64,000 nucleotides of DNA from contig NC_058133.1 of the NCBI RefSeq assembly GCF_016433145.1, forward strand, positions 250,568,020 through 250,632,019, in the 5' to 3' direction. This document shows positions 25,293 to 49,289 of the stretch, piece by piece. The number at the start of each line of letters is the position of its first letter. Positions within the stretch are counted from its first letter, which is position 1. The position numbers and the translations under genes were made by a program. This DNA comes from Gracilinanus agilis. Its lineage: Eukaryota. The notes under the pieces were generated by a model. It made no database searches, was not told the origin of the DNA, and saw nothing but the letters and a program-made list of their open reading frames with translations.

Positions 25293-25298
25293 ATTAAA
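25293..25298 (+). terminator. Candidate TMEM256 poly(A) signal ATTAAA
   Basis: Variant hexamer ~190 nt after the stop. Confidence 0.45.
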
Positions 25299-26284: not shown

Positions 26285-26891
26285 TGTAGGAGATAGCATC
26301 TAAATTATTTGGAAGTTAATTCCAAACACAGAGGACTACTTACAATTAAGGCACAGAGGAGTTATGAGATAGCAGGGGTTTGACCATGTTGTCACCTATG
26401 TGTCTGGGGTGTCCTGCATGGCCCATCCCTTTCACAGAACCTTTCTTTCCATATTAAGGCTGCCTGATTAGCATATCAGGACTTGTTACTATCTCCTCAA
26501 ATTACCTTCTCCCCTTTTTGTACATGTAAGCTTCTTTTGGGGGACTGTTTTATTTTTGTCTTTTGTATACCAAAGACCTTGTATAAGAGCCTAAGGTATT
26601 CCCTCCACTGCTGCTTCAGTGGGCTGATTTCCTGGCCACACCTAATCAAGGGTTGAGTGAAGAGGAAACCATTCTGACCCTGTTTTCATCCCAATATCAA
26701 ATTGGGCCCACCTTGTGGCCAGCTCTACTTTCCAACCTGATGACTATCCTGATGGGATTCCTTACTCTGCCATTGCTGTTTCTGATTGTGAATATATGCT
26801 AAATAAACTTACTTGCTTTTTTTAGCTTTCTGGTTGCTCCCTAAGTGCCTTGTGGGTATTTCTCTTGCAGTTTCCCTCCCCCTTGACCTCA
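26285..26891 (+). mobile_element. Possible LTR-like element
   Basis: TG start, AATAAA at ~26812, U5-like tail ending CA; no TSD confirmed. Confidence 0.35.
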
Positions 26892-27566: not shown

Positions 27567-29899
27567 TGTCTTATACACAGTAGGCACTTATTAACATTTG
27601 TTGAATTGAGTCTAAGCCATATCCTTGTGAATTCTGCCTCTAAATATTTTTTTTACATCCATCCCCTCCTTCCCAATTTTACTGCAACCACCTCATTCAG
27701 ATCCCTATGTCCTCTTATAACTTCAGTTCAGTTGTGTTGCCACTGCTGTAAAAATCATCATAATGCTCAGGTCTGGTCATGTCATTCCTCTTCTCAAAAA
27801 CCATTAGTGACTCCTTGAAGGCTGCTTCATAAAGTCCAAACTCTTTAATCTGGCATTCAAATCATGTCTCCAATCTATTCTTCCACCCTTATCTCACACT
27901 ATTCCCCTTCATATACAATACACTCCATCCAAATTCTTTGAATTTACATCTACAGTTTTCTGCCTTATTAAGTTTTTGCTTATTGCATCCCCTTTTCCTG
28001 AAACATCCTTTTCCTGATAACTCTGCCAGTTAAAATCCACTGAGGCGGAACTGAAAAGCCACCTCCTCCATGAAGCCTTCCCTTATCTTCCCTTTCCAGA
28101 CTGGTAAGTAATCTCTTCCGAACTCTCATAGATAGCACTATGTACCTCTCTTTTCTTATCACATTCAACCTTAATTCCCATTGTTTATATCTGAGTCACA
28201 TCTCCCCCTAAAATACTGTAATTGTGGTATTTTATTCATCTTTACGTCCTATCCCACCTATCTGCATAATGCCTGCACTTAGTAGGTACTTAGTAAATGA
28301 GAACCAATATGTAAGTGAAGTGAATGGAATGAAAATGGGCCATGGAAATGGAGATAAAGGAAAGGATCCTAACCATATTTTTAACACAGAATGGACAAGG
28401 CCTTGTGACAAAATGGAGAAAGAGGGGAAAAGAGATACCAAGATTACAAGCAAGTTTGACTTTTAAAATGGCAGAATCAGTAAAAATCTGGAAAGGAAGA
28501 TTAAGATACTGGCTATATATAAACCAATCAAGAAGTATTTGTTAAATAGTTACTGTGTACCAAACACCATTCTAAGTGCTAGAGATATAAATACAAAAAA
28601 TGAAACAAATCCTACTTTGAAAACACTTTTATTCTATGGGGGGATATTATGATATGTACATATGTGTAAGAAATCAAATATTTTGTAGCATTCTCCCTTC
28701 CCCTCAACTCACTGAAGGATGTTATCACAGAAATCATTAATTACAGAGGTGTTAATGAGGTAACATGATGTTCACACCTATGTGAACACTTTCTCTGATG
28801 CAATTAAAGGAAGCCAAGCCATTGGATAAGCAAGATGAGGTGATATATCAAAAGAGATAATATTTGTAAAAAAGAATTTAGCTAATAGCTGTAATAATAA
28901 TAGCTAACATTTGCATAGTTCCTACTATGCACCATGCACTATGACAAGCTCCTTATAAACATTTCATTTGATTCTAACAACTAGCCTGGGAGGTACGTGC
29001 TAATATTATCCTCATTTTATAGCTGGGGAGACTGAGGCTAATGGCATTAAGTTGTTCAGGGTCACACAGCTATGTCAGATTAGAATCAGGTCTGCCAGAA
29101 TCTAGGACTTCCTGGCTTAGAACACAGTGCCTGGCACTTACTTCATAGTAAACACTTTATAAATGCTTCATTTTCTCCCCTCCCCAACATTTGTTGAATA
29201 AAATGTCAGATATAAAGTAGGCAGTAAGGAAAAGCACTAGTAGTTGGGGAGATGAAAAGCTCTGTAGTACTTGAGCCAAGGAGATTCTATGTAGACTCAA
29301 AACTGAAAGGAATCTCAATGGCAGTTTTCCCAATCTATCTTACATAAGAGACCACCAAAGCCCAGAGAGTGGAAACAACTTGACCATATACACCTAGTTA
29401 GCCTTCCAGAGCCCAGGTTTCCAAATTCCCATTCAGGTGTTCTACACTACCTTTCTTTGAGTTTTTAGTAAGGATGAAACAATCTAAGGGAGTCTAGAAC
29501 GGCAAGTATGATCCTCACGTGTGTAAGGTAGGGACTGGAGACGCAGATATAGGTATGGGTGTAACATGCATATGGTGGGTGCCTAATAAATGTGGATAGA
29601 TGCGCACATAGGTGGTAACTAGGGCCATATGAGAAGAACCAATTTTAGGGAAGGAATCACACGCTTGAGATGGTTTCTGGAAGGTCGTAGTTCCTGCATT
29701 CACCAGGAGGGGGCGCTGTGGCCATGTGGTGGAAGTGTATGTGTGTGCCCAGTGTGATGACCTCCCCCTCCAAACCACTGTAACTTTTTCCATTAAACCC
29801 ACTCCCTTTACCCGCATACCAGCACTCCTCCCTTCTCCTCTAGGGTTGGCTGATTTGCATATCAGCATCCTACATCTTAGGGTCGACTAATTAGCATAT

Positions 29900-30900
29900 A
29901 TGGGAAAGGCCCTATATAAGCCCCCCATCAATCCCTGGGGTGCCGGAAGGCAGAAGAGGCTGGCCGGGATCCCTTCGGTGCCGCCCCCCCCCAACACCAC
30001 CACCCCTTCTACCCGACTTTCCACGCCCATCTCTCCTCCGAGGCCGAGAGCATGTGCTAAATAAATGCAGCTTGACTGATTCATGCCTCACACTTGTTTC
30101 TCCCCCTCCTCCCACCTCCCCGATACCTAGAATGACTCACTGAGCATGAACCAAGAAGGTGCCTATAGGCGCTACCAAAACAGGCCACCTCCGGATGTCT
30201 GCGGCCCAGCCGCTCAAGGGTTTGGCCGCTAGAGATCATAAGCTCGTAGATTGAGAGCACCGAATCCGCAGGAGAGGAAGATAGAGATAGACAGGGGATA
30301 GGCAGGGGGCGGGGAGGAGGGACTGTCTTTCAGCCTTCATTTTTTCATCCTCTCTCTCTTCGGCTTCCTTGGTCCCTGTAGTTGGAGAAGACCCGGAGAG
30401 CGGGGGAGGGGAGGCCCTCAAAGAAAGCAGCTGCCGGCCCTTTCCTCTTCTCTCACCCCACCTCAAGGGTCTGCACTAGTTCTCGGACCTCTCCTGCAAA
30501 ACCTAGGCCGAAGTGCAGTTCTAGGGCTCTCACGGATATGAATATATTTTATTCGTCCTGAACTGAGCCGCCGGAGCCCGCCTGGCACTGCCCGAGAGCC
30601 ATCCTAGGGGTGGGGGCTTACTGTAAGCCGGGGCGAAGAGGCGGCCGCTTAGGGCGGGGAGGGAAGGTCTAGCAGGGCGGGCTCTCCGGGGGTGAGGAGA
30701 AGAGAACAAAGAGACGGGTCGAGTGGACGGAGCTAGGGCTGGTGCGGCTGGGAGCCAGGCATTCCAGGACACCCGGCCCCCTCCCAGGGCTGCTTCTTCT
30801 ATTCCCTGCCTCCTCCCTCCCCCTAGCCCCACTTCCCCGGCATCTCCACTTCCTGCGACCACTTTTCCTGTTTCTCTGAGTGAGCCGCAGCCCTGACCCC
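29900..30900. promoter_or_regulatory. CpG-rich PLSCR3 promoter / first non-coding exon region
   Basis: CpG cluster with GC boxes (GGGCGG near 30652 and 30676); possible donor ga|gtgagc at 30880 upstream of the ATG exon. Confidence 0.65.
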
Positions 30901-31047
30901 ATCTTTCTGTCCCAGATTTGTGTCTTGGCCCCTAGGTCTCTCTACTCCCCCGCCCCTTTTTCTCTCCACAACTTTCCTTCCTTGGCTCTCTTTCTCTAGA
31001 AGACACTTCCCACGGGACATCGACATCCCGCTTACAACGCCCCCTCC

Positions 31048-31054
31048 ATGGCAG
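31048..31054 (+). CDS. PLSCR3: PLSCR3 start-codon exon (ATG GCA G)
   Basis: Donor G|gtaagg; exon acceptor at the tandem tag/aag site 30998-31002. Confidence 0.85.
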
Positions 31055-34000
31055 GTAAGGGTGTCATCTATGGAGGTAATTAAAGGTTCCTGGGACAGGG
31101 TGGCTCCTGGGATGGACAGGGCTGGGAGGGATCATGTCTCTGAGGGATAAGTGAAGGTGGTTTGACTTCCATTAGGCCTCCTCTTTTCCTTCATTCTCCC
31201 ATCTCTTGAGCTGGCAACCTGGCGGAGGAGAGAGAGTGGGATGTCAAAGGAGGCATCACCTGGGAATGTAGTTGAACCTGCTAGGACAGAGTCCCTCCCT
31301 GCTATTCTCTCATGGTGTCTCTGTTCTACCTCCTTCATCTTTTTCTCCAGGTGTTTTTGTTTCCTTCATTTCTTCTTCTTTTTTTTTTTTTCTGTGTTTC
31401 CTCTTGGTTCTCTGGAGGAACTTAAGGAAGTGAGGAGGCCAGTCTACCCTCTCACTCCTTGCCTCTTACATATCACCTTCCCACAGGTTACTTGCCCCCC
31501 AAAGGCTATGCCCCATCACCCCCATACCCAGTGACCCAGCCTGCTTCATATTCCAATCCTGCGCCTGCCCCAGGCCACATTGTCAACCTCTTTCCTTCCC
31601 CTGGTCCTGTGGCCCCCTTGGAACCAGAACCAGTTACTGTTCCCTTCCTGCAGTTGCCTGGAGTCCCTTCTGGCCTGGAATTCCTTGTACAGGTGAGTTA
31701 GGAGTATGAGGGAGGAAAGCTGTGGGATCTGGATCCTAAGTCATTTTCGCTCACAAACTATTTCATTTAGTCCTTACAACAGTGGTGTTAGGTAGGGTAA
31801 ATCCAAATATTATGCCCATTTTATAAAGGAAATAGGGATTAGAGGTTGGGACTTGGGTGGTTATATATTACAGCAATGTAGATATAGAGTCCCTGGCTTC
31901 AAGGAGCTTACAGTCTGATAGAGGAGATAACACTATGTATTAATAACTTTAATACATGATGAAATGTAAGAGACATAAGAGACATAAAATATTACAAGAG
32001 AAAAACTTGCTTTTGAGAAGTAGTTGTGGTAGTAATGAATCAGGAAAGATTCCTGGAAAGAAGAGGCTAGAGTTTTGAAAGATGAATAGAATTTGGACAG
32101 GTAAAGGAGGGAGGACTAAGAAACTGGGAGTTTAAGTAAAAAGTACAGGGAAGGGAAAGTAGCAGGAAATATGGCTGGAAATATAGGCTTTCTATCTAGT
32201 TCCATGGGGTAGGGGAGAAGTGTGTTTGTATGTGTCTCTCTTCCTAGATTGATCAGATCCTGATTCACCAGAAGATTGAGCGGGTAAAAGGTAAGTGGGG
32301 TATAATTGTGCCCAGATATGAAAGAATGATAGGTTGGAGAAGGCTGAAGGAGCTAGAAGAGAAAATACTACAAAGTAGAGGAAATCTCCCAGTTGGAAAG
32401 TGGTAGGATAAGAAATGGGGGAGCCTGCACCTTGTTTCTCTAAATAATCTTATCGGCTCCCCTGGATTTGACTATCATCTCTATGCCAATTATGTCTACA
32501 TTTATCTATCCAGCTACAGGATACAGCTACAGGCTCCCTCCTTAGCTACACTTTCTTCTGATAGACAATTGAACATTTATTTTAATTTGGGGGGTTTATA
32601 TCTTTGTTTTTAACATCACCTTCAATTTTCCAATATTTCCCTCTCACTTCCCTCACTCAGGGATTGATCACTTATAACAAATAATAAAAAAAAAAGGAAA
32701 AAAAATGATAGTTCAGCAAAACTAACAAAGATAACAACCAAGCCCTACCTTGGAGGTATCATTTTTATACTCATAACTCCTCACTTCCACAAAGAAGACA
32801 GGAAGTTGCATCATCATAACTTTTCTTTGGGTGCAAATGTGGCAATTATAGTTAAAACATTCAGTTTTAATTTCTTTTGTTTTATACATTTATATTGATG
32901 AAGCATTCATGTATATTGATTTCCTGGTTCTGCTTATCTCACTGTGAGTGTGTGTGTGTGTGTGTGTGCTCATATGTATTGATCTTAGACTTCCATGTTT
33001 CTCTGTATCCTTCACTTTCATCATTTCTCATATCAGAGTAATATTTCCACATATGGAACATTTTAAATTGGATATCCCTTGAGCATCTTAAACTCAACAA
33101 TTCCCAAAGCTCATTATCTTCTCCATGCCCCACTCCTCCCCACCAACCTCCACTCTTCCTGAGATCCTTATTTTTGTTAACAGTATCACTCTTCTTATAG
33201 GTACTTAAATTCAAAGCCTTAGAGGTGGACTCTTCTTTCTTTATTTTTCTTTATATCCCATCAATTCCTAAATCTTGTTCTTTCTACTTCTACCATATCT
33301 CTTGTCACATCTAGCCTAGACTACTACTGCAAGTATTTCTCCTAATTGATCTCTTTGCTCCTGTTTTTTCCTACTCCAATCTACCTTCTACAGTTCTGCT
33401 AGAGGTTTGACCTTGCATGCTCCTGCTTAAGAAGTCCCAGTAGCTCCTAGTTACTCCTAGAATAATTCTCTTTCTCTCTCTCTCTCTTTTTTATTCTTCA
33501 CTTCTGTCTTAGAATTGATAGAGTTCCAAGGCAGAAGAGTGGTAAGAGCCAGGTAATTAAATGACTTACCCAGGGTCACACAGTTAGGAAGTATCTGAGG
33601 CCAGATTTGAACCAAGAACCTCTTGTCTCCAAGTCTGGCACTCTATCCATTGAGCTACCTAGAAACACTTCCCTAGGATAATTCTGATTGTTATTTAAAA
33701 CCCTTCATATTCTAACTCCACTCTATGATTCCTGGCTTATTTCATATTATTCCCCTTCACAAACCTACATAACGACTCCTGTCCCCCATGCCTAGAATTC
33801 CCCCCTTACCTAGTTCGTAGAATCCCCAAGTTCTTTCCAGGCTAAGTTCAATCTTGTACAGAAAGACTGCCTCGATTCCCCAATTGCTAGTGTTCTTCCC
33901 TCAGCATCAAAACTTATTTTGTACCTACTTATTTTCCTGTTGTTTCTTCATGGCCCTCAAGGGCAAAAATGATTTAATTTTTGTCTTTGTGTCTCAATCA

Positions 34001-37000
34001 GCATAAGATCTGGTACATACCAAGTACTTAGTAAAGGATGATCAAATGAATGGAGGTAGACTCAGAAATTCAGTGCTAATGTTCATGTATTCACCTCTCC
34101 CCATCCCCATCTCTTGCTCCTAGCATTCTTTGGCTGGGAGATCTGTAACCGGTATGAGCTACGTTCTGGAGTAGAGCAACCACTAGGCCAGGCAGTTGAA
34201 GAAAGCAGCTGCTGTGCCCATCTCTGCTGTGGGGCTCGCCGGCCCATGCGTATCCGTGTGGCTGATCCCATGAACAGGGAGGTCCTACACTTGGTCCGCC
34301 CTCTACATTGTGGGACCTGCTGCTGTCCCTGTTGCCTTCAGGAGGTGGGCTTGGATGTCTGAGACTTAAGGGGAGCTTGGGTTTATGGACAGGGTCTTAG
34401 AGATTGGGCCTGAAAGGGCTGGGAGGCAACAACTCAGAACCTGGGAGGTGGAAGGCTAGAACTAAGAATGTTGAGGCTGGGGGCATTTGAGCCAGCAGCT
34501 AAGAAACATTGAGGTTAAGGTGCCAGAATCTGGTGGTCTTCTTCCTCCATGGACCCAGGTCCATGAAGAAAATTGAAGTCTGGATTGGAGGCTGGACAGC
34601 TTGGAACCTTGTGGTGATTCTCTCTCCTCATGTCCTTAGCTGGAAGTACAGGCCCCGCCTGGTACAACTATTGGGCATGTACTACAGACCTGGCATCCCT
34701 TCCTCCCCAAGTTCTCCATCCAAGATGCAGATCGTCAGACACTGCTTCGAGTTGTGGGTCCATGCTGTACCTGTGGTTGTGGCAGTGACACCAACTTTGA
34801 GGTAGGGATTAAGTAGCAGAAATTATGATAGCGGAGTTGAGAGAGCCAGTGAGAACTCTGGGATTTAATATCTTATACTGCATAAACACAGCTCTGGTCC
34901 TTCCCTTAAATAGAGAAATGCTCAAAAGTCTAACATATTATCTAAGATGGTCAGCCCTAGAAACCAAGATGGCCAGTTCTAATATATAGAATCTTTTAAT
35001 ACCAACACCCAAATCCAATATGGCTGCCACTAGGTTCAAAGATATTTTCTTCCATAAGATGACCTTATGGTCTAATGCAGTGGATACTGCTATGATGCCA
35101 AACTTCAACCTTTATACTGTAACATCCTAATACCTGACATTCAAAATGGTGACTTTTTAGTAATGATGTTTTAGGGAACGTTGAAGGAAGAGGACTTTGT
35201 AATTTCTATTATATTTTTTTAAAAATCCTTACCTTCTGCCTTAGAATCAATACTAAGTACTGGTTCCAAGGAGGAAGAGCAGATAGGGCTAGGCAACTGG
35301 GGTTAAGTAATTGCCCAGGGTCAGACAAACTAGAAAGTGTCTGAGGTCAAATTTGAACCCAGCAACTCCTGTTTCCAGGACCAACTCTCTATCCATTGAG
35401 CTACCTAGCTGCCCCTCCTTTGTCTTTTTAGACAAGTTCTTTCTTCTAGTGGTGCTGGTTTAGTATCCCGCTGGTTGACCGATTGCTGCAGGCAGGAAAA
35501 CCAGTTTTCAACACTGACGCTCAAAGGCATGGCATTTAATTGATTGATTGGCACATGTCAACACAGAATCATAAGATTATAGATTTAGAGTCGGAAGCCA
35601 CCTAGTCCAACCCTCTCATTTTATAAGTAAGGCAAGTGAGGTTCATAGAAGTAAAGTGATTGAACCTCCCCCATTTAAAAAAAATTTTTTTAAGTGACTT
35701 ACTCATATTCACAAGATTTGGAAGACAATTTAGATCTCTATCCAGTCCCCTTCACTTTAAGATTAAGAAACTGATGCCAAGAATGAGCTAGGTAGCTTAA
35801 TAGATAGAGTAACAGGTCTGGACTTGGAAGGACCTGGATTCAAATCTGGTCTCAGACACTTCCTAGCTAAGTGATTCTGGGCAAGTCACTTCTGTCCCTT
35901 CTGTCTTAGAGTTGTTACTAAAACGGAAAAAAAAAAGAAAAGAAAAAAGAAACATATCAGAGTTTCGGTAACTAGTTACTTAATTAATTAATCAGTAACC
36001 AATTACTTAGTTACCTCTAAGTAACAAGTTCAAGACCACATAGTATATAGCAAAACTTGAATTAGAACTCAGATTCTTTAGATACCAAGATATGAAATTC
36101 ATGCTCTCAAGTCGTTTATAATTGAATGGTGGAATATAAGATATACCAAAATAAGGATGATACAGAGTAGAATGTTATGATAGCAGAGTAGATATCTGGA
36201 TAAAGTGTTTTAGAAAACATATAGAGAGGAAAAGAAAGGGAGGGAAGAATAGGACTTGGGATGACAAAGGCCAAGCTAACTGTGACCATGTTTCACCATG
36301 TCCTCAAACAGAAGAACTCTCAGGGATCCTTAGAATCAGCTTGAAAGCAGTAGCTTTGGGATAAATAAGAGCTTCTTGGCAACACTTTAACTGCTGTAAA
36401 TAAAAAGAATTCATTGCTCCAAGAAGTTTGAAAATAGATCAGTTTGAGAGGGGTCAGCTCATGAATGATAGCTCCATAGGGTTAAGACTCTCCATGGAAC
36501 CTGCTGGTTTTCCTTGGTAATCCGCCATGGACCTGTCAGCATTCTTGCCAGGTAACAAGAGGGAATAGATTCCACATAAAGCAGCTAGCCTCCTCCATAT
36601 ATCATGGCTCATCAGTTCCCTTTTCCTGGTCATCAGGTGAAGACTAAAGATGAATCACGGAGTGTGGGTCGGATCAGTAAACAGTGGGGAGGCATTGTGC
36701 CAGAGGCCCTCACTGATGCAGACCAGTTTGGCCTCCAGTTCCCCCTGGACCTTGATGTAAGATTGAAGGCTGTGCTGCTGGGAGCAGCTTTTCTTATTGT
36801 GAGTGCTCATATCCTATGCTCCTTCTATGTCCCTCTTTATCTGAGTGTCTTGATCATCTCAAAAGTATGAGGGTGGGGTGGAGGGGGGAGAATGAACCGT
36901 AATGTGAAAAAAAAGATGGGCAAATAGAGAGGGGTAGTCCTTTGGGAGAACATGGATGGGATTAAAGGATACTATGTCAGGATCCCTCTTACCGTGTCTT

Positions 37001-37087
37001 TATTGGCTCCTCCCCTCCCCCCAGGATTACATGTTTTTTGAGAGGCCGGGAGATGCTAATTCGGGGCCTTCGGTCATCACCAGTTAG
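31048..37087 (+). CDS. PLSCR3: Phospholipid scramblase 3, join(31048-31054, 31487-31692, 32248-32290, 34124-34344, 34640-34801, 36637-36798, 37025-37087), 287 aa
   Basis: [41 protein letters not shown], Cys-rich CCPCC palmitoylation motif, [27 protein letters not shown]...VITS*. 864 nt, phases consistent. Confidence 0.96.
31487..31692 (+). CDS. PLSCR3: PLSCR3 proline-rich exon
   Basis: ccacag|GT ... CAG|gtgagt. Confidence 0.95.
32248..32290 (+). CDS. PLSCR3: PLSCR3 exon ([14 protein letters not shown])
   Basis: ttcctag|ATT ... AAG|gtaagt. Confidence 0.94.
33500..33662 (-). mobile_element. Marsupial SINE copy (PLSCR3 intron)
   Basis: Reverse-complement SINE core. Confidence 0.75.
34124..34344 (+). 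CDS. PLSCR3: PLSCR3 exon ([10 protein letters not shown]...CCPCCLQE)
   Basis: ctcctag|CA ... GAG|gtgggc. Confidence 0.95.
34640..34801 (+). CDS. PLSCR3: PLSCR3 exon (LEVQAPPG...DTNFE)
   Basis: ccttag|CTG ... GAG|gtaggg. Confidence 0.95.
35220..35415 (-). mobile_element. Marsupial SINE copy (PLSCR3 intron)
   Basis: Reverse-complement SINE core. Confidence 0.75.
35790..35950 (+). mobile_element. Marsupial SINE copy (PLSCR3 intron)
   Basis: Forward SINE core with A tail. Confidence 0.7.
36637..36798 (+). CDS. PLSCR3: PLSCR3 exon (VKTKDESR...AAFLI)
   Basis: catcag|GTG ... ATT|gtgagt. Confidence 0.95.
37025..37087 (+). CDS. PLSCR3: PLSCR3 last coding exon
   Basis: cccccag|GAT ... AGT TAG. Confidence 0.95.
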   Translation, partial: DYMFFERPGDANSGPSVITS

Positions 37088-38142
37088 AGGCTGATCATGT
37101 AATCAATGATAGGTATCCTAGTCACAGAATTCCAAGATGTCTACCACCACCCTGACCTGGCCTGACCCCAGGATCGAAGATGACCACTACCACTCTCCAG
37201 GATGATGGTGTCTTGAGGAGAGAGATCTAGGAGTGGAAGTTAGGGCTTAGATAACCCAAAGAAAAGCTTGAAAGCCTTCATTATGAAGACTGAGGCTCTA
37301 TTCCCTGCAAGGAGTAGGGACATACAAATGCTGCATGTGCTGAATGCTAAGGGTCTTTGTTTTAGGCCCCTTTCTCTTTTGGATCCTTTAACTGATCCCC
37401 TAAAGGTTGCCATCACTACTCTGGTAATTTGCTCCATAGTACCATTCCATTTTACTCCTCTTTCTCTGGTACCCCTCTCTATCCTTCCCCCAGCACTAAC
37501 CATCTTCCTCTTCCCCTTATTTACATTTTTCTACCTCCTTTGTTCCTAATATGACCCCATCTCCCCTCCTAGTATCATAATATCAAAAGAAAATCTAGAT
37601 GTAGGGGCTGGGGAATGTTATTATTACAGTAGCTCCCCACCACCACCACCACCTCAAAAAAAGGAAAAAAATAACCTGCTAGAGTCATAAACCTTTGGGA
37701 CTCTTCCTTTTACATATAAAGAAGCTGAGGTCAAGTTAAAGTAAATTGACCAAAATCACACAGTGAATTGGGGGATGGGAAGGGAACAGAACTCTTGATC
37801 CCAAGTCTTCTGAGCAGTGATTTCCTCCCCTCATTTTACAATGTACCTTTTCTTCCCTGAACAACATAGATCCAGTCCCCCTGGAACCATTCTTGGACCC
37901 ATGGCACTTTAAGAGGAGATGAGTTAACCTTCCTTATACATGCTTTTTGGGGCTAGGGCCCTAGTACCCAACTATCAGGTCCCCAAACATCATTTCTCCT
38001 GCCCTTTTCCCAAGCTGGTGCTTATTGCAGCTTTTCTTATGCCTTATTTAACATTTTTTTCTCCTCTCTCTGTCTGAGCACTAGGGAGAATAATGTGTCT
38101 TTGTATGGTGTGTGTATACATTTGTTATATATATGCATATAT

Positions 38143-38148
38143 ATTAAA
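38143..38148 (+). terminator. Candidate PLSCR3 poly(A) signal ATTAAA
   Basis: Variant hexamer ~1.05 kb after the stop, following an AT-repeat tract. Confidence 0.45.
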
Positions 38149-39700
38149 AACTTTCTAACTTTTTGGACACTGGGGAATTCATATGTGGAGTTGGAGAGGG
38201 GACTTTGTATGGAAACAAAGGAAAATTGAAGTCAAAACCTTCATCCTAAATTAGTCATGTTCAAAATCCAAGTTGGTCTCTATTCTGCCAAGGTCAGAGA
38301 GGTCTGCATCCCAACATTACCATTTGCCAAGACCTATCTTCACCCAAGTCTCGAGAGGACTTCTTCCATCATCTAAGGTTAGAGGACTATGCCCACATAA
38401 TCCAAAGTGTTTACTCCTATCTTTACTTCTACCCATTTCTCCATGATACAGTTGAAGATGGTAGCAGCAAGAGGTTCTGGTATGGAATGATGTCCAGTTT
38501 TCCACATATTTCATTCTGAGTTCTGCAAAGCTTCTGTGGGTGGAGTGGGGTGCCTTAGCCAGGCTTCTGCTTCCTAGGTAGGGACTAAGCAGAGCCAAAT
38601 GAATGTGGTTGCCTTCGTCTTAGAATTTAATGCTAGAAGAAACTTCAAGCTTATAGCTTTGCAAATGATGAAGTGATTGAGACTTGTCAGAAGTCAAAGA
38701 GTAAAAACAGGAAAGCTAGAATTCGAACCCAAGCCTTCTGATTCCCAATTTTGTGCCCTTTCTACTTTGATACATCTCTCCCTTTGCACTCCTGCATAGG
38801 TTCTAAAGTGCTATGCCCGTTCCCTTAGACACCAGAGTCTACCCTAAATTGCAGGGAGAGGAGAAAGGAAAGGAAAGCATCCTTAATATTATTAGTTCTG
38901 AGTGAAACTCCATTCCCTTCCTATGGAGTGGGTTCTGGTACACCACACTTCATTCCAGTTAGATAACAAGGCAAAACAATGAGGAGGATTTTATCCCCTG
39001 ACATCAACCCAGCTGAAGTTCATGTTATACCCTATAAAGAAAGAATGGAAGTGGTCATCTTGTCATCTCTTCGAAGTGATGGTAACATTTTACCACCCTA
39101 GGTAAGGCTGGTTCATGACCTACTGGCTAGTGGTACAGAAATTCCATTGCTAACACTCCAAGATCTATCAGCAGTCACCCTCAGAGCCCATGCTCAGTGG
39201 AAGAAGAGCAATTAAGTCTGAGGAAATTCAGACTTGCAGGGCTGGCCAACTGTATTCCTCAGAAGACTAGGTGGCAGGAAAGATAACCTGGGGCATGCCT
39301 CCAGAAACTTCAGAAGGAAGAGGCATCAGAGGAAGTACAGAACTTAACTAAATGATGAGGACTTGGAGATCTTCCCTGGTTTTCTTTCTTTTCTTTTTTT
39401 AAACCCTTATCTTCTGTTTCAGAATCAATACTGTCTATTTGTTTCAAAGCAGAAGAGCAGTAAGGGTTAGGCAGTGGAGGTCAAGTGACTTGCCTGGGGT
39501 CACACAGCTAGGAAGTGTCTGAGTTCAGATTTGAACTACGGACCTCCTGTATTTAGGCTCTTCATCCTAGCTGCCTCCTCTCTCCTGGTTTTCTGAGAAG
39601 TTTCTGAGAAGATGGAGAATAGTGAAAGACTGAAGGCTCAGGTCCCAGGAGATACAGGTGCTGGTAGAAGCTGCCATAGTCTTGATTGTGGGTCAGTATC

Positions 39701-39794
39701 TTTGAGGTTCTAGACAGCAGAGATCGTATCATCTGTCACTCTGGAAACTTGCCCAACATTCCTAATGTGGGACTCTGTGAATGCACAGCTCCAC
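39701..39794 (-). pseudogene. TNK1: TNK1 exon remnant (UBA domain)
   Basis: Acceptor tttgtag|; VELCIHRVPH*ECW..DTISAV*NLK vs human VELSVHGVTHQEC..DVVSAIRNLK; stops at 39762-39764 and 39710-39712 plus a frameshift. Confidence 0.85.
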
Positions 39795-40704
39795 CTACAA
39801 ACAGAAAACATCAAACCCTTCTCCTCTCAAAGACTCATAGGTTGTATGTGATCCTCTTCATCCACAAAGGCTCACATCACAGGGGCTACAAGTATTTGTC
39901 TGGCCTGCTGAGCCTCCTACAGGCTAACCAGATATAATCTTTTGAGAGGCCCAGGGAAATGTACTGAAGTCAGCTCTTACTGACTCAAGACTCAATTAAA
40001 TTTTCAGTGAGCTTTACACTTTAGAATTCAACACATGCTACAAACTAGGGCTTGTTTTGTTGAAAGTAATGGAGAGGGGCAGCCAGGTGACTCAATGGAT
40101 AGAGAGCTAGACCTAGAGACAGGAGGTCCTGGATTCAAATGTGACCTCAGATACATCCTAGCTGTGTGACTCTGGGCAAGTCACTTAGCCCCAGTTGCCT
40201 ATCCTTTACTGTTCTTCTACCTTGAAACCAGTAATGATTCTAAGATAGAAGGTAAGGGTTTTAAAAAAGCCATGGAGAAAGTGTTAATAATGCAGATTGA
40301 ATTGAAATGGATCTTGCATACATTTTTGGAGAGCTATTTGTTAACTAAATGCCAGCATATTCCTGGGCTTGAGTCTTTCTGGGAATCTAGTTGGGTTGGG
40401 AGTTAGGGAAGAAGGAAAAGAGACATCTGAAGGAAAGGATTATTACTAATGTAATAATAATAGCAATTAGCAATCATATATCAGTATAAAGTTTACAAAG
40501 CCCTTTATTTAAAGGATGATTTGGTCCTCACAACAACCCTAAGAGGTAGGTGCTATTATTATCCACATTTCACAGAGAAGGAGGCCAAGAAAAATTCCAT
40601 GACTTGTCCAGGGTCACACAACTAAGTATGAGTATGAGGCAGGATTTGAAGCCAGGACTCTTCCATTATAACATCCAACTGCAGTCATATATAGCAACAG
40701 AACA

Positions 40705-40940
40705 CTGGATTTCTGTGAAATGGCTAGAAGGACTGGTTACTCACAGAGAGAGCTGTCCCAGATTTTTAAAGAGATCTGGAAAGAAAAATAGAGAATTTAA
40801 TGTGACCCAGATGCCTGATCTCCCATTCCCCCCCTCCCTAGAGACCCCAGTTTCCTACCCAAGCTCTCCTCAGATCTTTCTCCCTTGGACCTGTGTTGAA
40901 TCCTGAAACCTTTCTTTGCGCCTTAGCAGGAGGTAACAGG
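40705..40940 (-). pseudogene. TNK1: Probable TNK1 proline-rich-region exon remnants
   Basis: PPAKAQRK (40910-40933) vs PPARGQRR; after acceptor ctttccag| at 40775, IS..L..LSL*..SS..EIQ vs ISRSLESVLSL..SSPPEIRQ. Short matches. Confidence 0.45.
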
Positions 40941-41782
40941 TAAGATATGGGAGTGCAGAAAGTGCAGAAAGGAGAAAACAGGGGGTTGGGACGGAAGAGA
41001 TTAGGGGAAGGCAAAATATAAGAGGGAAGTGGAGAGAGAATAGATGATAGGAAAAGGGAATGGAGGCAGGAGAGATCAGAATGAAGAGACAGTAGAAGAG
41101 AATTGGGTAGGATTTTTTCAGGGACTGGGACTTATCTCTTGGCGGATGTCCTCCAAGCAGAAGAAGCTTGGTCAGTCAGCAGGATAAGGAGTCTAACATG
41201 GAGGACAAAGATATGGTATCACAAGAGCAAAGGGAAGACTGAGGGAGCTATGACTTGGGATCAGAGAGGTCTTCAACCTAACCCAAGGTTCATTATCTCC
41301 GAGAACATTTTACACATTTTACTTAGATTGGTGTGGGGTGGCAAAAGATAAGAGTGACTAAAGCCCTATTCATTATCCCACATGTTGTTCAGTCATTTTC
41401 AGTCACGTCCCACTCCCATTTGGAGTTTTCTTGGCAAAGATCCTGGAGTGGTCTGCCATTTCCTTCTCCAGCTTATTTTACAAATGAAGTAACTGAAGTA
41501 AACAGGGTGAAGTGACTTGCCCAGGATCACCCAGCTAGTAGACATCTGAGATTATATTTGAACTCAGGAACAGCAATCTTCCTGACTCCAGGTCCTACCC
41601 TCTATCCACTGTGCCACCTAGCTGCTCAAAAACCTCTGCTGAAACCCAGGATTGATTCAAATTATCCCTTCCCTACCCCATTTCTCCCTTGTACTAATAC
41701 TAATTGAACTGCTCCCTAGTTCTCTCACTTTTCTCTTTCTCAATACCATCTTTAGGAGAATTCCATTATTATTAGTAATCAC

Positions 41783-42032
41783 CCACTTAGGGGAATTCCA
41801 CTTTTGGTTGTGGCCCAGTGCCTGCATCAGTCCAAAGTCAGCCACCCTGATGGTTGTAGGGGAAGAATAGGAATAAGTTTTAAGTGTCCACTAGCTCTCA
41901 GCCTTAATGTTGGCTATGGCCCCTGCCATGGGATAAAAACAGACAGAAAAGAGACATAGCAGTTGGAATGGTGGCAGAGGATTGTGGAAGTGAGGTGTTG
42001 AGGGAACAAGTTAAGAGTACAATAAACTTCAT
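41783..42032 (-). pseudogene. TNK1: TNK1 exon remnant (catalytic loop / DFG exon)
   Basis: LFCLFLS-MAGAIANIKAE-LV (human LLCLFLRQLAGAMAYLGARGLV), then DT*NLFL and TIRVADFGLMQALG (DFG at 41831-41839); frameshifts present; donor TGG|gtgatt. Confidence 0.85.
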
Positions 42033-42204
42033 CTTCCACAAAGGACAAGGGGAATAAGAAATCTTTATATTATCATCCCTTTCTTCTCTGGAAATCCCTT
42101 CTAGTTCTAACTTCCTGCCCTTCTGCTTTGCGTTTCAAGAAGCATTTCATTCTCTTCCTGACCAATCATTCTTTAGAGTTACAGGGACCAGTGATCAGAA
42201 GTCA

Positions 42205-42340
42205 GCCTTCCCATCTGGACACATGGGGCCATGAGTTTAAAGCCCAGGATTATTACAGATACCCCCTAAAGAAAGTGACCAAGAAATGGACCACTAGAAC
42301 CTAATGAGCTCCCCTGAAAAGACTTCACTGGCCCTGGGAT
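42205..42340 (-). pseudogene. TNK1: TNK1 exon remnant (VAVK / alphaC exon)
   Basis: IPGPVKSFQGSSLGSSGPFLGHFL*GVSVII aligns without gaps to VPVAVKSLRVGPEGPMGTELGDFLREVSVMM; TAG at 42266-42268. Confidence 0.8.
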
Positions 42341-42707
42341 GTAGGCATGAGGAATTGAGTAAAAGAGATGGAGAGGGCTGGGAGATAAGACCCTAGAAGA
42401 AGTGGACTGAAGGAAGGCAGTTGGGAGGTTAGGAATTAGCAAGACATTATTAGTTCTGCAAGGAATTATTTATATTTAGAGCTCCAAGGGACTTAAAATT
42501 TATCTAACTCGACTCTATTATTTTACACCTGAAGTTGCTAAAGCCCAGAGAGAGGAAACAACTTGTCCAAACTCACATGGTAGAGTTTGAAGCCAGATTG
42601 TCTGAGACCAAATCTAGTACCATCCTGGGTAGATAAAAGAAGAATCTGAAAAGGAGTCCAGTGAAGACTGAGGGGATCAGAAATAGTTTGGAAGGAGAGT
42701 GACTGAA

Positions 42708-42866
42708 AATTTTGCACTCCTGTAGTGTCCAGAGCCCCTGGAGAACAATAATCCAGTCTCACCACATGGCTTTAGGTAGTTGACAGAGCCCTGTTAATCT
42801 AGGATCAAAGAAGGAAAATTGGGGAGCAATAAATTTCTTTGGCTCAGAGGCCCAGCCCTTCAAGAT
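42708..42866 (-). pseudogene. TNK1: TNK1 exon remnant (pre-kinase / Gly-loop exon)
   Basis: Intact acceptor ttttgtttcag|; reads ILKGWASEPKK (human ILGGFAPEHKE), GLCQLPKAMW* and VLQGLWTLQECK (human VHRGLWTLPSGK). The GSGCFG Gly-loop is missing. Confidence 0.8.
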
Positions 42867-43229
42867 CTGAAACAAAATGAAGAGGAAGTAAAAGGAAAGG
42901 CATGGAAACACTCCCTCCTGCTTCATTAGAATTTAGAGGATCAATTCTGTGTGTTGGGAGATTGGATAGAAGCACTTCTTCCTAGAGTTAAAGCATGCAT
43001 ACTCAGCTCCATGGAAATGTTCTAATACTACACCTTCTATGTATATATATTTTGATTTTGTTTTTGTGTTACATTTTGTTTCCCCATCCGACTTCCAATG
43101 AGACAGATGCTTCCAAATTATATATATTCACCATCTCACCCAAAAGAAGGCTTCTCTGTAAGAATTCTCAAGTAAGGAGACTCCCTCATCTAATTACCTT
43201 TCAGATAAATAATCTTCCAAATTTCTGAC

Positions 43230-43397
43230 AAGTAAAAAAGTTCCTCAACATTTGAGATTCTCTGGTAAACAAATCATTCTCTTCCCTATGATGCCTCTAT
43301 TCAACTTAATTCAGTAAGCTATAAATGCCAGTGTTATACAAAATATGGTGGTTGACTGAGGATATGAAATAGAGGTGGTGATTGGAGGAAGAGACAT
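43230..43397 (-). pseudogene. TNK1: Possible TNK1 SAM-domain exon remnant
   Basis: MSLP...ITLAF...*IKLN...LPENLKC*G then gtcaga, vs MLP...IQLAQF...ELN...KPEDLDGIG. Weak similarity but in the expected position. Confidence 0.45.
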
Positions 43398-44532
43398 AGT
43401 ATGGGCACCTCTCTTAAGTGTGCAAACTAGTAGAGTAGCTGCAGATAAGTAATCTCCTCCATTGAGACCTCCCTTAGTAATGTCCCCCTCCTTCCTGAAT
43501 ACCATAAAGAATTGTTCCCCCACACCTCACTGCATACCCATTTTTAAAAGGAAAAGGAAAAGGGGGCAGCTAGGTGGCTCAGTGGATTGAGAGCCATGTC
43601 TAGAGATGGGAGGTCTTGGGTTCAAATCTGATTTCAGATACTTCCTAGCAGTGTGACCCTAGGCAAGTCACTTAACCCCCATTGCCTAGCCCTTACTGCT
43701 CTTCTGCCTTGGAAATAATATACAGTATTGATTCTAAGATGAAAGGTAAGGTTGTTTTGCTGTTGTTTAAAGAAGAAGGAAAGGAAGAGGTAAGAAAAAC
43801 AAAGTAGAAAACTGAGAGGGAGAAATTTTATAGAGGGACACAAGAAAAGAGAGAAATCAGGGATCAAAGGAGACAAATAGAAACAAGAGAAAGAAGAAAA
43901 GTTAGACGGGGAAAGTGCTGAGGGCAGGAAAAAAAAAAGGATAAAGAGGAAGGGAGAAGAGTCTAGAAAGGGAAAGAAAGAAAGAATAGAAAAAGATGGA
44001 CCTAGGGAAAAAGAAAGCAAGAGGGAAGGTTGCATGATAAGAGAAGCCCTGGAGCCATAATGACTTTCAGTTCAGACAAGACAATCAAGTAGGAAACTTG
44101 AAGGTGTCTTTCCCCCCACCTCCCTGAAGGGAGAAGAAGCATAAACTCAGCCTGATAGGGTTTCCAGGGCAATGTCTAAAGGTAGCCTAGAATGAGGAGG
44201 AACAGAGAGAGACAGAACCTTAATGAAAGGTGAAACAGGGTTTTCTGAAAGTTGGAGCTGGGAGAACACCTCTCATTTTATAGTTGAAGAAATGAGATCC
44301 AAAGAGTCAAACAACTCATAAATGGCAGAGCTGGGTCTTGAACTCAGATCTTCTGACTCTCTTTACTCTTAGTGAAATTTGCCCCTCTTTTTAAAATCAG
44401 GGAAAGGGGGAAAGGAAGTGTTTGCAGGGTAACTAACAGGGTAACCTCAACCCCAATATTTCTATAATGAGTATGCTTTGTCTCATTCTCCTAAAGTGGA
44501 TTCCATTGTGTCTCCCACTCAAGGGTCTAAGG

Positions 44533-44724
44533 CAGTGATTCCCAAAGTGGGAGCCACTGCCCCCTGGTGGATGCTGCAGCGATCCAGAGGTGGGGTGATG
44601 GCCACAGGTGCAATTATCTTTCCTATTAATTGCTATTAAAATTTTTTAAAATTAATTTCTAGGGGGCTAAGTAATATTTTTTCTGGAAAGGGGGCGGTAG
44701 GCCAAAAAAGTTTGGGAACCACTG
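44533..44724. mobile_element. hAT-type non-autonomous element (MITE)
   Basis: TIRs CAGTGATTCCCAAA / TTTGGGAACCACTG; perfect 8-bp TSD GTCTAAGG. Confidence 0.88.
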
Positions 44725-46411
44725 GTCTAAGGTCTCTTCTCTCAGCTATGACTCCCATCAGCTTTATCCCTCCAATGAGAGGTCCTCTAATGAATTACAA
44801 TATGTATTTAGCTTTTATTTTAAAACCCATACCTTCTGTCTTAGAATCAATACTAAGTGTCATTTCTAAGGAGAACAATGAGGACTAGGCAATTGGGGTT
44901 AAGTGACTTACTTAGGGTCACACAGCTAATAAGTGTCTTGCGGCCAAATTTGAACCCAGCTCTTCCCAGCTCTAGGCCTCACACTCTATCCACTATGCTA
45001 CCTAGCTGCCCCATAATATGTATTGTTTTTATTGTAACACATATTGCTTTTATAAAAAGAAATTCACTTCAAAGACATAACAAGAAAAGCGTACAAAACA
45101 AACATTTCCTCTAAACACCTTGGTGCAGTGCCAAGGGCCACAGAGGGGACAAGGGTCCATTGAATCCATGCAGAATGACAGAGTCATACGTGGGTCTTGT
45201 GACCTGAAAAAAGACCACAGGAAGGATGGAAACCCCAATCAGACCCCCCTGCATGACTCCCTTCTGACCAACACTTTTTGTTACTGGAATTATTGTAATC
45301 AATATCTCTAGGAAAGCCCCAAGACTTGTAGTCTAGATACAGAAATCCCCTTAAAGAAATTCCCTAATCACCTTATAATAAACCAGCAATTAATGAGTTA
45401 ATATTTCATACCCTCAGCCAAAGCAGCATTCAAAATGATAGAAGCTGCTTCTAATCTCTCCTGATTTCTGAGAAATCTGGAGGACAGAGGATGGCAACTT
45501 AATATACTTTATTACTTAAAATATTACTTAAAATACTTTATTACTTCATTGAAATTGACCCTGTAGTTTTGGAAGTTCACACTTTACCCTACCTTTTGAA
45601 ATGTGCTGAATAGTAGATGACTATTGTTGAAGTGATGTTTGGATGAGACTGGGTCTTGGTGACCTTTGAATGCTGTTTAGACTGGGGAGTAATCTACATG
45701 AAGAAATGTGTTGTTCATGCCAGCTCCTGTGAAGCCTTGAAATCTATGCTGTTTAGACTTGGAGCTTGGTGTATATTGTTCATGCCAATCTTGTGGAAAA
45801 AACTGGTCTTGAAGAAAAAATTATAAAAATAAAACACAACTCAAAGGCTGGTAGAACAGCTCTGGGCTGACTTGTTGGTACCAGATTGTTCTCAGTTTCC
45901 TTTCTTATTTGCCAATACCACCAGGCTATCCAAGCTTCCTTTTGATGTGTAGGCTGGCCCTACACAGTGCAGTGGATAGAGAGCCAGGCCTGAAATCAGG
46001 TAGACTTATTTTCCTGAGTTTAAATCTGGCCTCAAACACTTACTAGTGTTTACGTGATCCTGGGTAAGTCACTTAACTCCTATTGCCTTGATATTCTTCT
46101 GTCTTAGAACCAATACATAGTATTGATTCTAAGATGGAAGGTAAGGGTTTAAGAAAAAAAAAAAAAAGAACAAATGCCAAGCCAGACAAAGATAATAAAA
46201 ATTATTATTATTTAGCAATTATAATACCCATGAAAGTCTCAATTAAGGAGACTTACCTTCTCTGAGTCACTCTTGCTCCCTACATAAAGAAAGTCCTGTC
46301 CCCAAAGAGCATTCTCTTTCACTAGACACCACTCACTAGACATTAGACATCAGTGAAAAAGTTATTCACATAAAAATCAAACTAGAATAATTTTTTTTAA
46401 ATGGCCTAGAC

Positions 46412-46814
46412 CAGTGATGGGCAAACTACAGCATGTGGGCCAGATGCAGCCCCCTGAAATGTTCTATTGAGCTCTGCGACATTATTCCTAATCTGATAAA
46501 TACAATGAGTAGGATACAATACAATAAAACTTTTTTTTTTTAAACCCTTGAACTTCGGTGTATTGTCTCATAGGTGGAAGATTGGTAAGGGTGGGCAATG
46601 GGGGTCAAGTGACTTGCCCAGGGTCACACAGCTGGGAAGTGGCTGAGGCCGGGTTTGAACCTAGGACCTCCTGTCTCTAGGCCTGACTCTCACTCCACTG
46701 AGCTACCCAGCTGCCCCCTACAATAAAACTTTTAAAGAGTTGCCTTAGAAACAAACTGACAGATGAGCATTTCCTTTCCTTTGGCCCCCTCTTTAAAAAG
46801 CTTGCCCATCACTG
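46412..46814. mobile_element. hAT-type MITE interrupted by a SINE
   Basis: TIRs CAGTGATGGGCAA / TTGCCCATCACTG; TSD GCCTAGAC/GTCTAGAC (1 mismatch). Confidence 0.88.
46532..46718 (-). mobile_element. Young SINE inserted in the hAT MITE
   Basis: TSD tacaataaaact (46520-46531, 46719-46730). Confidence 0.88.
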
Positions 46815-46893
46815 GTCTAGACTATTTAGATCTTTTTCAAGGTATGCCCAGTTCCATCTCTTGTTGCCAATTGAAAATAGGCTTCTCTTAACC

Positions 46894-48965
46894 CCCTGAT
46901 GGTGAAACTATGGCACGCATCACGCGCATGTCATCGAAAGTATGAGGCCACATGCAAAGGATGAAATATTTGCTGTAGTGTAGTGTAGACACTCTGTGCT
47001 GGAGGTCTGTAGGCCAAAACAACAGAACTCTGGCACAGAGCATCTAGTTCTGGGACTTCCAGGCTGTTAGGGGACCTTTGACCTCACTTCCGGTCAGCAG
47101 AGCAGGGAGCAGCAGAATGCTGCAGGGGACACATTTCTGGGGACCCTGAGATCGCCATTGCCAGCAACCACATAACCACAGCAACCATCATTCATCCAAT
47201 CTACTGTTCTGGGGTGTTGTGGATTTCTAATTGACCATCATTACTGAGATAAGTGAGGGGGAAGCTAGGATTGGTGAGGGCCTGTGCTATGGGTACCATT
47301 TCCCACCATTAGAAATAGCAGCAGCCATCTTAATTTACATAAGGAACGCGATCTTGCAGCATAGTGCAGACTCCATTTCACCATTATTACTGTTGTGCAT
47401 CCTTATTAACTCCTATTTCTGCTTACATGTGCTATCTTGTGGTCAGTTAGGCTAGTTAACCCCTAATTGCCTGCAAGGCTAACAGGCTATCTATAATTCT
47501 ATCTTCTGTCACTGCCAACTTGATGGAGAACCCCAAAAATAAAAAAAACAAGGTTAAGTAAAGGAAGTGGTAGTAGCAGTAGTCAACCCTTTTGAGAGAT
47601 ATGGACCAAGATGTATGGCATTATAGAAAAAAATGGCAAAAATAATTTTACGTTCTATGTACTGAAATGGCAGTAAACAGAATGTGGTATATAAATAGAC
47701 ATTTTGAAACTAATCATTCCCAGCTCTTGAAAAAAAGTGAGGATGAAAGGAAGGAATACATTTCTAGGCAGCTACACCTTTATAAGAGCCAATCTAATTC
47801 CATCCTTAAATTTGTAAAAAGCTCTACAAATTTAACATCTGCAAGTTTGAGCATTGCTCACTCCATAGCTCAGCATGGAAAAGCACTCAGTGAGGGAGAA
47901 TTTATTAAAGAAACTCTCCTAAGATGTGCACCAGTTCTATTTCATGATATACCGAAAAAAAGATGCTATTATTAAGAGAATATCTGAGTTACCACTCAGT
48001 AGAAATATTATAAAAGACCAAATAATGAGACTGACACAAACGTACAACATCAATTAAAGAGAGACATAAGTAATTGTAAATATTTTTCGATCTCTCTTGA
48101 TGAAACTATTGATGTCACATCCCATGCTCAGTTGGCCATTATTAGTCAATATTCTGATGGTCTCACAATGAGAAAAGAGTTGATAAAGTTAATATCAGTG
48201 CCAACAAGTACATTGGGAAGCAAAATATGTAAAGTTGTTATATAAACATTCCATGACTTAAGCATTGATATCTTTAAAGTTGTGTCAGTGACAACAGATG
48301 GGGCACCAAATGTGGTGGGGAAAAAAGTTGGATTTGTCAAATTGTGTACGGAAGCTATTGGACATCGTATTGTGCCTTTTCATTGTATTATTCATCAGGA
48401 GGCTTTATGTGCCAAGGCAGGATTCACTGACTTAAACGACTTAATGTCAGTTGTTACAAAAATAGTTAATTTAATAGTTGCTCGTCCCCTTCACAAGCAA
48501 GAATTTTCTGCACTTTTACTGAAGGTTGATTCCATCTACAGTGGACTGGTGATGTACAATAATGTAAAATGGCTGAGCTGAGGCAAAGTTCTTGAGCGCT
48601 TTGTGGAGTGCTTTGAAGAAATTAAGGTATTTCTTGAGGATAAGGATCTGGGAGACTTTCCTCAGCTCAATGATGATAAGTGGGTTAACATCCTGATGTT
48701 TTTTACAGATCTCTCTGTTCATATTAATGAACTGAATTTAAAGTTACAAGCTTTTGGCAAAAGTATTGACGTTATGTTTGGATACATAAAAGCTTTTGAA
48801 AGTAAACTTCAAATTTTCAAGCGAGATGTAGAAACTAAATCTTAAAAGTATTTTCCTTGAGTAACAAAGTATTTTGAGAAGGCCAGTGCAGTTGTACAAA
48901 ATGAAATGGAACCCTTGCATAATGTACCAGCATGTTTTAGATTCATTACTTGACCAGTTCAGTAA
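46894..48965 (+). mobile_element. Decayed, 3'-truncated autonomous hAT (Charlie / OposCharlie-like) DNA transposon
   Basis: Degenerate left TIR (ccc)TGATGGTGAAACTATGGCACG followed by a transposase remnant; no right TIR seen. Confidence 0.8.
47600..48960 (+). pseudogene. hAT transposase remnant
   Basis: One frame from 48081 reads YFSISLDETIDVTSHAQLAII, VSVTTDGAP, HCIIHQEALCAK, NVKWLS*GKVL and FTDLSVHINELNLKLQ (hAT catalytic Asp residues, CxxH and W motifs). In-frame stops include 48243 and 48579. Confidence 0.88.
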
Positions 48966-49092
48966 TGGTCACAACTCTCTCACCTCTTCAGATATGCTGG
49001 TACATTCCCAGTTTGGGTGTGGAGAAGACAAAAGCATTGTGAATCAATGCCAGAAAACCCATCTGGAGGACGAGAATTTGGAATGTAGTTTT

Positions 49093-49289
49093 TTTTTTTT
49101 TGGTTTTTTTTTTTTAGACCCTTAACTTCAGTGTATTGTCTCATAGGTGGAAGAGTGGTAAGGGTGGGCAATGGGGGTCAAGTGACTTGCCCAGGGTCAC
49201 ACAGCTGGGAAGTGACTGAGGCCGGGTTTGAACCTAGGACCTCCTGTCTCTAGGCCTGACTCTCACTCCACTGAGCTACCTAGCTGCCC
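49093..49289 (-). mobile_element. Young SINE copy
   Basis: Near-identical to the 46532 copy; flanked by repeated tggaatgtagtttt. Confidence 0.85.

Follow-up and report, generated by a model that had tools for sequence, protein, structure and literature searches.

The 64,000-nucleotide stretch of the Gracilinanus agilis genome analyzed here (contig NC_058133.1, positions 250,568,020 to 250,632,019; the whole stretch is hereafter called the window) holds, next to PLSCR3, a decayed TNK1 gene that is unable to encode a kinase and was very likely inactivated only once, in the marsupial stem lineage. Several disabling lesions are identical in opossum, koala, Tasmanian devil and Dromiciops, and TNK1 is intact in platypus and whales, which argues for a single stem-lineage inactivation. 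TNK1 combines SAM, kinase, SH3 and UBA domains and is regulated by 14-3-3 and ubiquitin binding (PMC9703632, PMC8429728). It is treated as a cancer drug target, and the question has been raised why selection maintained its core of kinase, SH3 and UBA domains (PMC8429728). According to a passage in one of these papers, knockout of the mouse homologue Kos1 leads to spontaneous lymphomas and carcinomas (PMC9703632, citing Hoare et al. 2008).

The first-pass annotation of this DNA, made from the letters alone, had described disrupted TNK1 exon remnants in the right order and on one strand, separated by intron-like spacers, and had proposed aligning TNK1 with the locus. TNK1 loci were reached via their PLSCR3 neighborhoods, going from a PLSCR3 exon query to named mammalian PLSCR3 proteins and from these to the flanking DNA. 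The reference was our own spliced sperm whale TNK1 model (12 exons, 665 aa, GT-AG junctions), whose exon peptides were compared with the minus strand of window positions 38000–46500 by frameshift-tolerant local alignment, using 100 residue shuffles per exon as the null. As a positive control, the intact whale exon open reading frames (ORFs) matched the SAM_TNK, PK_Tyr_Ser-Thr and UBA models in Pfam. On the minus strand of the window the collinear exon chain scored 158, against 14.9 ± 6.9 for shuffled exons (z = 20.6), and the chain score was at the null on the plus strand of the same DNA and on the minus strand at 46.5–55 kb and 55–63.5 kb. The remnants are genuine; outside them, the window has no TNK1-like sequence. 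Seven of the 12 coding exons could be traced, in descending order on the minus strand:

42694 to 42866, minus strand: exon 3 remnant, the glycine-loop exon (blastn to koala and Dromiciops exon 3, 69–79% identity, E down to 3e-15)
42212 to 42340, minus strand: exon 4 remnant, reading "VPVAVKS..." (frameshift-tolerant alignment, alignment and splice contexts)
41780 to 42034, minus strand: exon 5 remnant, catalytic loop and DFG, with a core at 41813–42005 that reads "...LFCLFL..MAGAIANI...TIRVADFGLMQALG"
41136 to 41330, minus strand: exon 6 remnant, kinase C-lobe, "...EEPW...PPLC...ADRPTF..LQE" (frameshift-tolerant alignment; tblastn, 41210–41127)
40680 to 40775, minus strand: exon 10 remnant, 5′ part, "ISKSLESVLSLG..." (blastn to koala and devil exon 10 remnants, 79–80% identity)
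39701 to 39794, minus strand: exon 11 remnant, first half of the UBA domain (frameshift-tolerant alignment, alignment and splice contexts)
39105 to 39208, minus strand: exon 12 remnant, second half of the UBA domain and C-terminus (frameshift-tolerant alignment; tblastn, 39206–39105)

The whale exon peptides located five of these remnants. Individual similarity was strongest for exon 5 (42005–41813, score 101 against a null of 44.3 ± 5.2, z = 11.0; tblastn E = 0.014) and exon 11 (39794–39701, 66 against 30.9 ± 3.6, z = 9.7), and lay well above chance for exon 4 (42340–42184, 65 against 39.0 ± 4.4, z = 5.9) and exon 12 (39208–39105, 56 against 34.6 ± 3.8, z = 5.6); exon 6 followed with a score of 61 against 46.7 ± 6.0 (41277–41136, z = 2.4, p = 0.03). 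Neither exon 3 (p = 0.15) nor exon 10 was significant in the window with the whale peptide alone; the former was recognized only through marsupial orthologues and the latter only via its koala, Dromiciops or devil counterparts, and the remainder of exon 10 beyond its 5′ part could not be traced in the window. The exon 12 remnant was also placed in a nucleotide alignment of whale, platypus and three marsupials. The original description of the remnants was thus borne out, except for its borders: the interval 39636–43397 does enclose remnants, but it misses exon 12 at 39105–39208, and its upper 500 bp carry none.

Isolated window fragments are too decayed for recognition alone. Against the PDB, phmmer gave nothing beyond chance hits and an EGFR DFG match that was not significant (E = 1.3), no Pfam domain was found in any of 10 window fragments, and a word-indexed protein search with the fragments yielded no candidate. 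Because single fragments were unrecognizable, the claim of a dead TNK1 could not be judged without a TNK1 reference. An initial tblastn with all whale reading-frame fragments and composition correction switched off was swamped by proline-rich low-complexity sequence, reversed peptides matching equally well, and it was therefore replaced by true exon peptides with shuffle controls.

Within the aligned parts of the window there are at least 14 in-frame stops and at least 8 frameshifts, and every exon remnant carries both kinds of damage. The exon 12 remnant has four in-frame stops and one frameshift, and its native stop is gone; exon 11 has two stops and one frameshift. The exon 10 remnant starts at 40775 and ends at about 40680, with an anchored distance of 20 nt, compared with 21 nt in whale. 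The exon 6 remnant shows three stops, a window-specific 19-nt deletion, a −1 frameshift and a TGA at the Arg of ADRP. The catalytic HRD segment of exon 5 is deleted, and the rest of that remnant contains two stops and several frameshifts. Exon 4 has stops and a window-specific 16-nt deletion, and exon 3 has a TAA stop at "PE(P)DG", an 8-nt glycine-loop deletion and further window-only deletions. Some splice acceptors had been reported to be intact, and the AG is indeed kept at exons 3 (ttcag), 10 (...ttccag), 11 (TAG before G) and 12 (CAG); the exon 4 acceptor has lost the G of its AG. The donors are mutated from GT to GG at exon 4 and to AT at exons 6 and 11. At the 3′ end of the exon 5 remnant (41740–41815), an apparent local tandem duplication of about 35 nt, "GGAATTCCCCTAAG...GGAATTCTCCTAAAG", occurs only in the opossum window.

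The missing exons correspond to two further features:

42912 to 43123, minus strand: deletion scar, 211 nt in place of 1163 nt in koala and about 1.3 kb in Dromiciops, where exon 2 and exon 1 remnants are present (collinear blastn blocks)
40776 to 41135, minus strand: spacer of 360 nt between exon 6 and exon 10, in the place of exons 7–9 (SH3 region) and their introns

The SAM-domain exons 1–2 are deleted in the opossum lineage. The exon 1 and 2 segments of koala, Dromiciops and devil found no match anywhere in window 42000–46500, and whale exons 1 and 2 scored at the null. An "LLREV..." motif at about 43.4 kb was considered as exon 1 and rejected; whale exon 1 is at the null there, and the orthologous koala sequence precedes exon 1, window 43208–43419 corresponding to DNA about 0.8 kb upstream of that exon. 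The interval from the exon 6 donor to the exon 10 acceptor measures 360 nt in the window, 407 nt in koala and 435 nt in devil, versus 1738 nt in platypus and 2473 nt in sperm whale, and the 360-nt spacer is alignable among marsupials. The SH3 exons 7–8 gave no significant match in the spacers of window, koala and devil, the marsupials with a readable interval. A candidate exon 9 at 40933–40884 (p = 0.013–0.025) was discarded; it is absent in koala and devil and fails multiple testing over 15 tests. From the full TNK1 domain set (SAM_TNK, tyrosine kinase, SH3 and UBA), the window therefore contains kinase and UBA remnants only.

The position of the remnants is fixed by one neighboring gene:

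31486 to 37084, plus strand: PLSCR3 coding exons, the synteny anchor (tblastn of marsupial PLSCR3 proteins)

By tblastn these exons have 92% mean identity to Gracilinanus PLSCR3 and 85–87% to that of Monodelphis, without an exact match to either. The TNK1 remnants (39105–42866) sit where a TNK1 orthologue is expected, on the opposite strand directly downstream of PLSCR3 at a distance of 2 kb and tail-to-tail with it, TMEM256 lying on the plus strand beyond PLSCR3. In sperm whale, narwhal and platypus, the TNK1 gene is likewise tail-to-tail with PLSCR3, 1.3–1.8 kb away, which supports the orthologous position proposed for the pseudogene. The annotated products of sperm whale (700 aa) and platypus (681 aa) match SAM_TNK, PK_Tyr_Ser-Thr and UBA_TNK1-sid3, and the narwhal model of 511 aa matches SAM_TNK and UBA_TNK1-sid3 only. 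Exons 4–8 and 10–12 of platypus TNK1 are unbroken, save for two apparent shifts in the divergent exon 10. The annotations of Tasmanian devil, koala, Dromiciops, Monodelphis and Trichosurus call no protein-coding gene within 10 kb downstream of PLSCR3, which a dead TNK1 would explain. Since the remnants are still set apart by spacers and part of the splice sites are preserved, the wreck is the original gene rather than a retrocopy, in line with the first-pass annotation; the spacers align with introns of koala, devil and Dromiciops. The locus thus has several features of a unitary pseudogene, being disabled at its ancestral position with the intron structure retained, neither processed nor duplicate, and having functional orthologues in related lineages (platypus, sperm whale and narwhal, at the lengths given above).

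The same wreck is present in other marsupials. Over 37.0–44.5 kb, the window is collinear with the stretch that follows PLSCR3 in koala, Dromiciops and devil (about 66–80% identity). Remnants were found of exons 1, 2, 3, 5, 6 and 12 in koala (z up to 16.6; tblastn E = 4e-8), of the same exons in Dromiciops (z up to 11.7) and of exons 2–6 and 12 in devil (z up to 15.5); they are less decayed than those of the window and all contain stops and frameshifts. An assembly artefact in the window is thereby ruled out, because three other genomes hold the same disrupted remnants. In its own right, the non-coding alignment of window 37001–44493 with positions 23676–31762 of the koala locus (L006) is collinear at 70–79% identity over more than 7 kb, its breaks being mainly lineage-specific short interspersed elements (SINEs). 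One of these breaks is:

41383 to 41625, strand not assigned: SINE copy near the former exon 6 acceptor, with 20 other copies in the window by self-blastn; the window–koala alignment is interrupted here; another SINE lies at 39377–39558

Lesions were polarized by whale and platypus, which agree wherever platypus sequence is available; the platypus locus lacks exons 1–3, and two exon 3 lesions were polarized by whale alone. These are a CCA to TAA stop, in frame with conserved flanking codons, and the 8-nt glycine-loop deletion, both found in four of four marsupials (window, koala, devil and Dromiciops); around the deletion the anchor distances are each at least 8 nt below that of whale. All four also share one extra nucleotide before "TIKVADFG" in exon 5 (the distance from NLLL to VADFG being 35 nt in whale, 36 nt in koala, Dromiciops and the window, and 37 nt in devil), one missing nucleotide in exon 6 (PPLC to ADRP, 63 nt in whale and platypus, 62 nt in koala, Dromiciops and devil, and 61 nt in the window), a TAG stop at the Arg of "IRNLK" in exon 11 (CGG in whale, CAG in platypus) and the GT to AT change at the exon 11 donor. 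A 1-nt deletion in exon 10 is common to koala and the window, and the short exon 6–10 spacer without exons 7–8 is common to the window, koala and devil. Other lesions are confined to one branch, namely a 28-nt exon 4 deletion and loss of the exon 11 5′ part in Australidelphia, and the 16-nt (exon 4) and 19-nt (exon 6) deletions and the loss of exons 1–2 in the window. The identity between window and koala is 70.6% in exon remnants and 76.2% in flanking non-exon DNA, as expected under neutral evolution. The exon remnants (39105–42883) have thus changed more between opossum and koala than the former introns and flanks around them; faster CpG decay of a once GC-rich coding sequence may be a cause of this.

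Comparison of the locus across marsupials, also proposed in the first-pass annotation, therefore upholds a long-dead gene through its shared lesions, and corrects the view that the loss was particular to this marsupial lineage, given that koala, devil and Dromiciops share the wreck and platypus is intact. Since the inactivating lesions are common to both groups, the loss is older than the didelphid–Australidelphia split. Between them, Didelphimorphia and Australidelphia cover the marsupial crown, or nearly so, and the loss of TNK1 is probably a shared derived character of all living marsupials. TNK1 would have been inactivated once, on the branch between the separation from placentals and the first crown divergence, and would have drifted neutrally since then, with deletions and SINE insertions building up separately in each lineage. 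Judging by the lesions held in common, the gene seems to have died a while before the crown divergence, so that it may have spent enough time as a pseudogene to gather several further lesions. By commonly cited dates, the marsupial crown divergence is of the order of 80 My or more.

Several alternatives were weighed against a TNK1 gene that died in the marsupial stem. That the remnants are over-read noise in intergenic DNA is extremely improbable. Single fragments have no significant match in the PDB, Pfam or protein word searches, and a naive tblastn with low-complexity intron frames lets reversed peptides reach equal E-values, as chance resemblance would predict; however, neither the chain score nor the null results of its other-strand and upstream controls are compatible with noise, TNK1 is much easier to recognize in the orthologous blocks of koala, devil and Dromiciops, and the nucleotide alignments reach whale and platypus exons. 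Equally improbable is that a processed retrocopy, or a piece of the paralogue TNK2 (ACK1), stands in place of the original TNK1. The window reads "DFGLMQAL" where whale TNK1 has "DFGLVRSL", which is closer to the ACK1 motif "DFGLMRAL". Nevertheless, the breaks between remnants fall at the exon boundaries of TNK1, marked by AG acceptors and former GT donors, and the remnants occupy the TNK1 position beside PLSCR3. Whale TNK1 exon 5 and 6 peptides outscore every ACK1/TNK2-like fragment on the window, koala and devil remnants, and platypus exon 5 does so too, but platypus exon 6 is merely level with the best of them in the window and devil, so that the lead of TNK1 is clear for whale peptides and for exon 5. 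Over these remnants the whale and platypus TNK1 exon peptides score 43–156 and the ACK-like fragments 35–107. TNK1 orthology rests mainly on synteny; the exon structure also points to TNK1, and the score comparison is only indicative.

A recent or opossum-specific loss, with similar damage arising independently elsewhere, is very unlikely. It would accommodate the many lineage-specific lesions (the exon 1–2, 19-nt and 16-nt deletions of the window, and the 28-nt exon 4 and exon 11 5′ losses of Australidelphia), and the ADRP TGA, at a presumed CpG site, could plausibly have arisen by parallel mutation. Against it stand at least five identical lesions in both major marsupial clades, absent in platypus and whales, among them stops that require two substitutions (CCA to TAA and CGG to TAG) and indels of a single nucleotide, and exon remnants without excess conservation between opossum and koala. 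A functional TNK1 duplicate elsewhere in marsupial genomes, in which case marsupials would not be knockouts, is unlikely as well. Fragment-sized proteins matching whale exon 6 have either 81–99% or at most 60% identity, and none shows the identity that a marsupial orthologue should have, which is weak evidence against a duplicate. The three lowest proteins read from the 81–99% group run on into sequence resembling the whale intron 6 translation, and on the basis of these three the group is taken to be placental genomic ORFs; the matches at or below 60% are ACK-like.

Some observations count against a single stem-lineage inactivation of TNK1, or loosen its support. The TGA at ADRP is found in the window, koala and devil, but Dromiciops has CAA, and at this presumed CpG site a parallel change is possible. 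The G of the exon 4 acceptor AG is lost in four of four marsupials, but the bases replacing it differ between species. Indel placement depends on the alignment at 50–60% identity, and anchor distances confirm only the exon 5, 6 and 10 shifts. Our self-built 665-aa whale model differs from the annotated 700-aa product. The ACK-like comparison set consists of coelacanth, sturgeon, tortoise and metagenomic fragments, with no mammalian TNK2. Finally, "unitary" is drawn from the marsupial annotations and the fragment-sized protein matches, which is weak evidence.

In the neighborhood, pieces of NLGN2 lie on the minus strand, left of PLSCR3, and two runs of N fall within the NLGN2 region (6345–6489 and 14717–14998). 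The order NLGN2-TMEM256-PLSCR3-(TNK1)-TMEM95-KCTD11 is that of human 17p13.1, and we take the window to show this gene order in reverse orientation. The koala and several cetacean annotations hold TMEM256-PLSCR3 read-through isoforms, in which a DUF423 N-terminus is fused to the scramblase; a TMEM256-PLSCR3 read-through is known in human, and the koala and cetacean isoforms resemble it. Upstream of the wreck, about 2.1 kb of the window (46890–48966) are present in opossum and absent at the orthologous koala position. Five plus-strand ORFs at 47646–49122 look by eye like a decayed hAT-type transposase, with no Pfam match at E ≤ 0.01.

Compared with an intact TNK1, the decayed gene keeps the same position and strand relation to PLSCR3 and TMEM256, the exon order and the boundaries of exons 3–6 and 10–12, and a recognizable kinase (VAVKS, DFG and C-lobe) and UBA sequence; it differs in having no ORF, no SAM exons in the window, no HRD loop and, in the marsupials with a readable interval, no SH3 exons, and it is neutrally diverged. 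TNK2/ACK1 shares the kinase fold and the SAM-kinase-SH3-UBA logic of TNK1, but ACK-like sequences fit the remnants worse than whale TNK1 peptides do. TNK2 lies at a different locus and has additional CRIB, clathrin-binding and Mig6-homology regions. A clade-wide unitary pseudogene is known from GULO in anthropoid primates, where, as here, a single-copy gene was disabled in place, with introns retained, lesions shared by the clade and neutral decay; in our case, the gene is a signaling tyrosine kinase and the clade an entire mammalian infraclass. In a full-text literature search, no paper connected TNK1 to marsupials or opossums, and the matches for TNK1 pseudogene or gene loss were not about such a loss. 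The marsupial TNK1 loss appears to be unreported in the searched literature, although it may already be implicit in orthology databases.

Lineage-specific gene losses are common, and that of TNK1, a poorly understood kinase, is useful rather than startling. We know of no phenotype linked to it. In mouse, known TNK1-dependent phenotypes concern the gut epithelial injury response and STAT3 and Ras signaling, and TNK1 has a 14-3-3 motif at S502. Provided that no working TNK1 persists at another locus, marsupials would collectively be natural TNK1 knockouts, a mammalian infraclass that has long lived without a ubiquitin-binding kinase linked to tumor suppression and gut injury. TNK1 would then be dispensable in one whole mammalian branch, and gut-barrier responses, tumor incidence and changes in TNK2 would provide comparative material. 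TNK2 would be the obvious candidate to cover for TNK1, and marsupials could thus serve as a natural system for learning what TNK1 is for and how its absence is compensated by TNK2 or other pathways.

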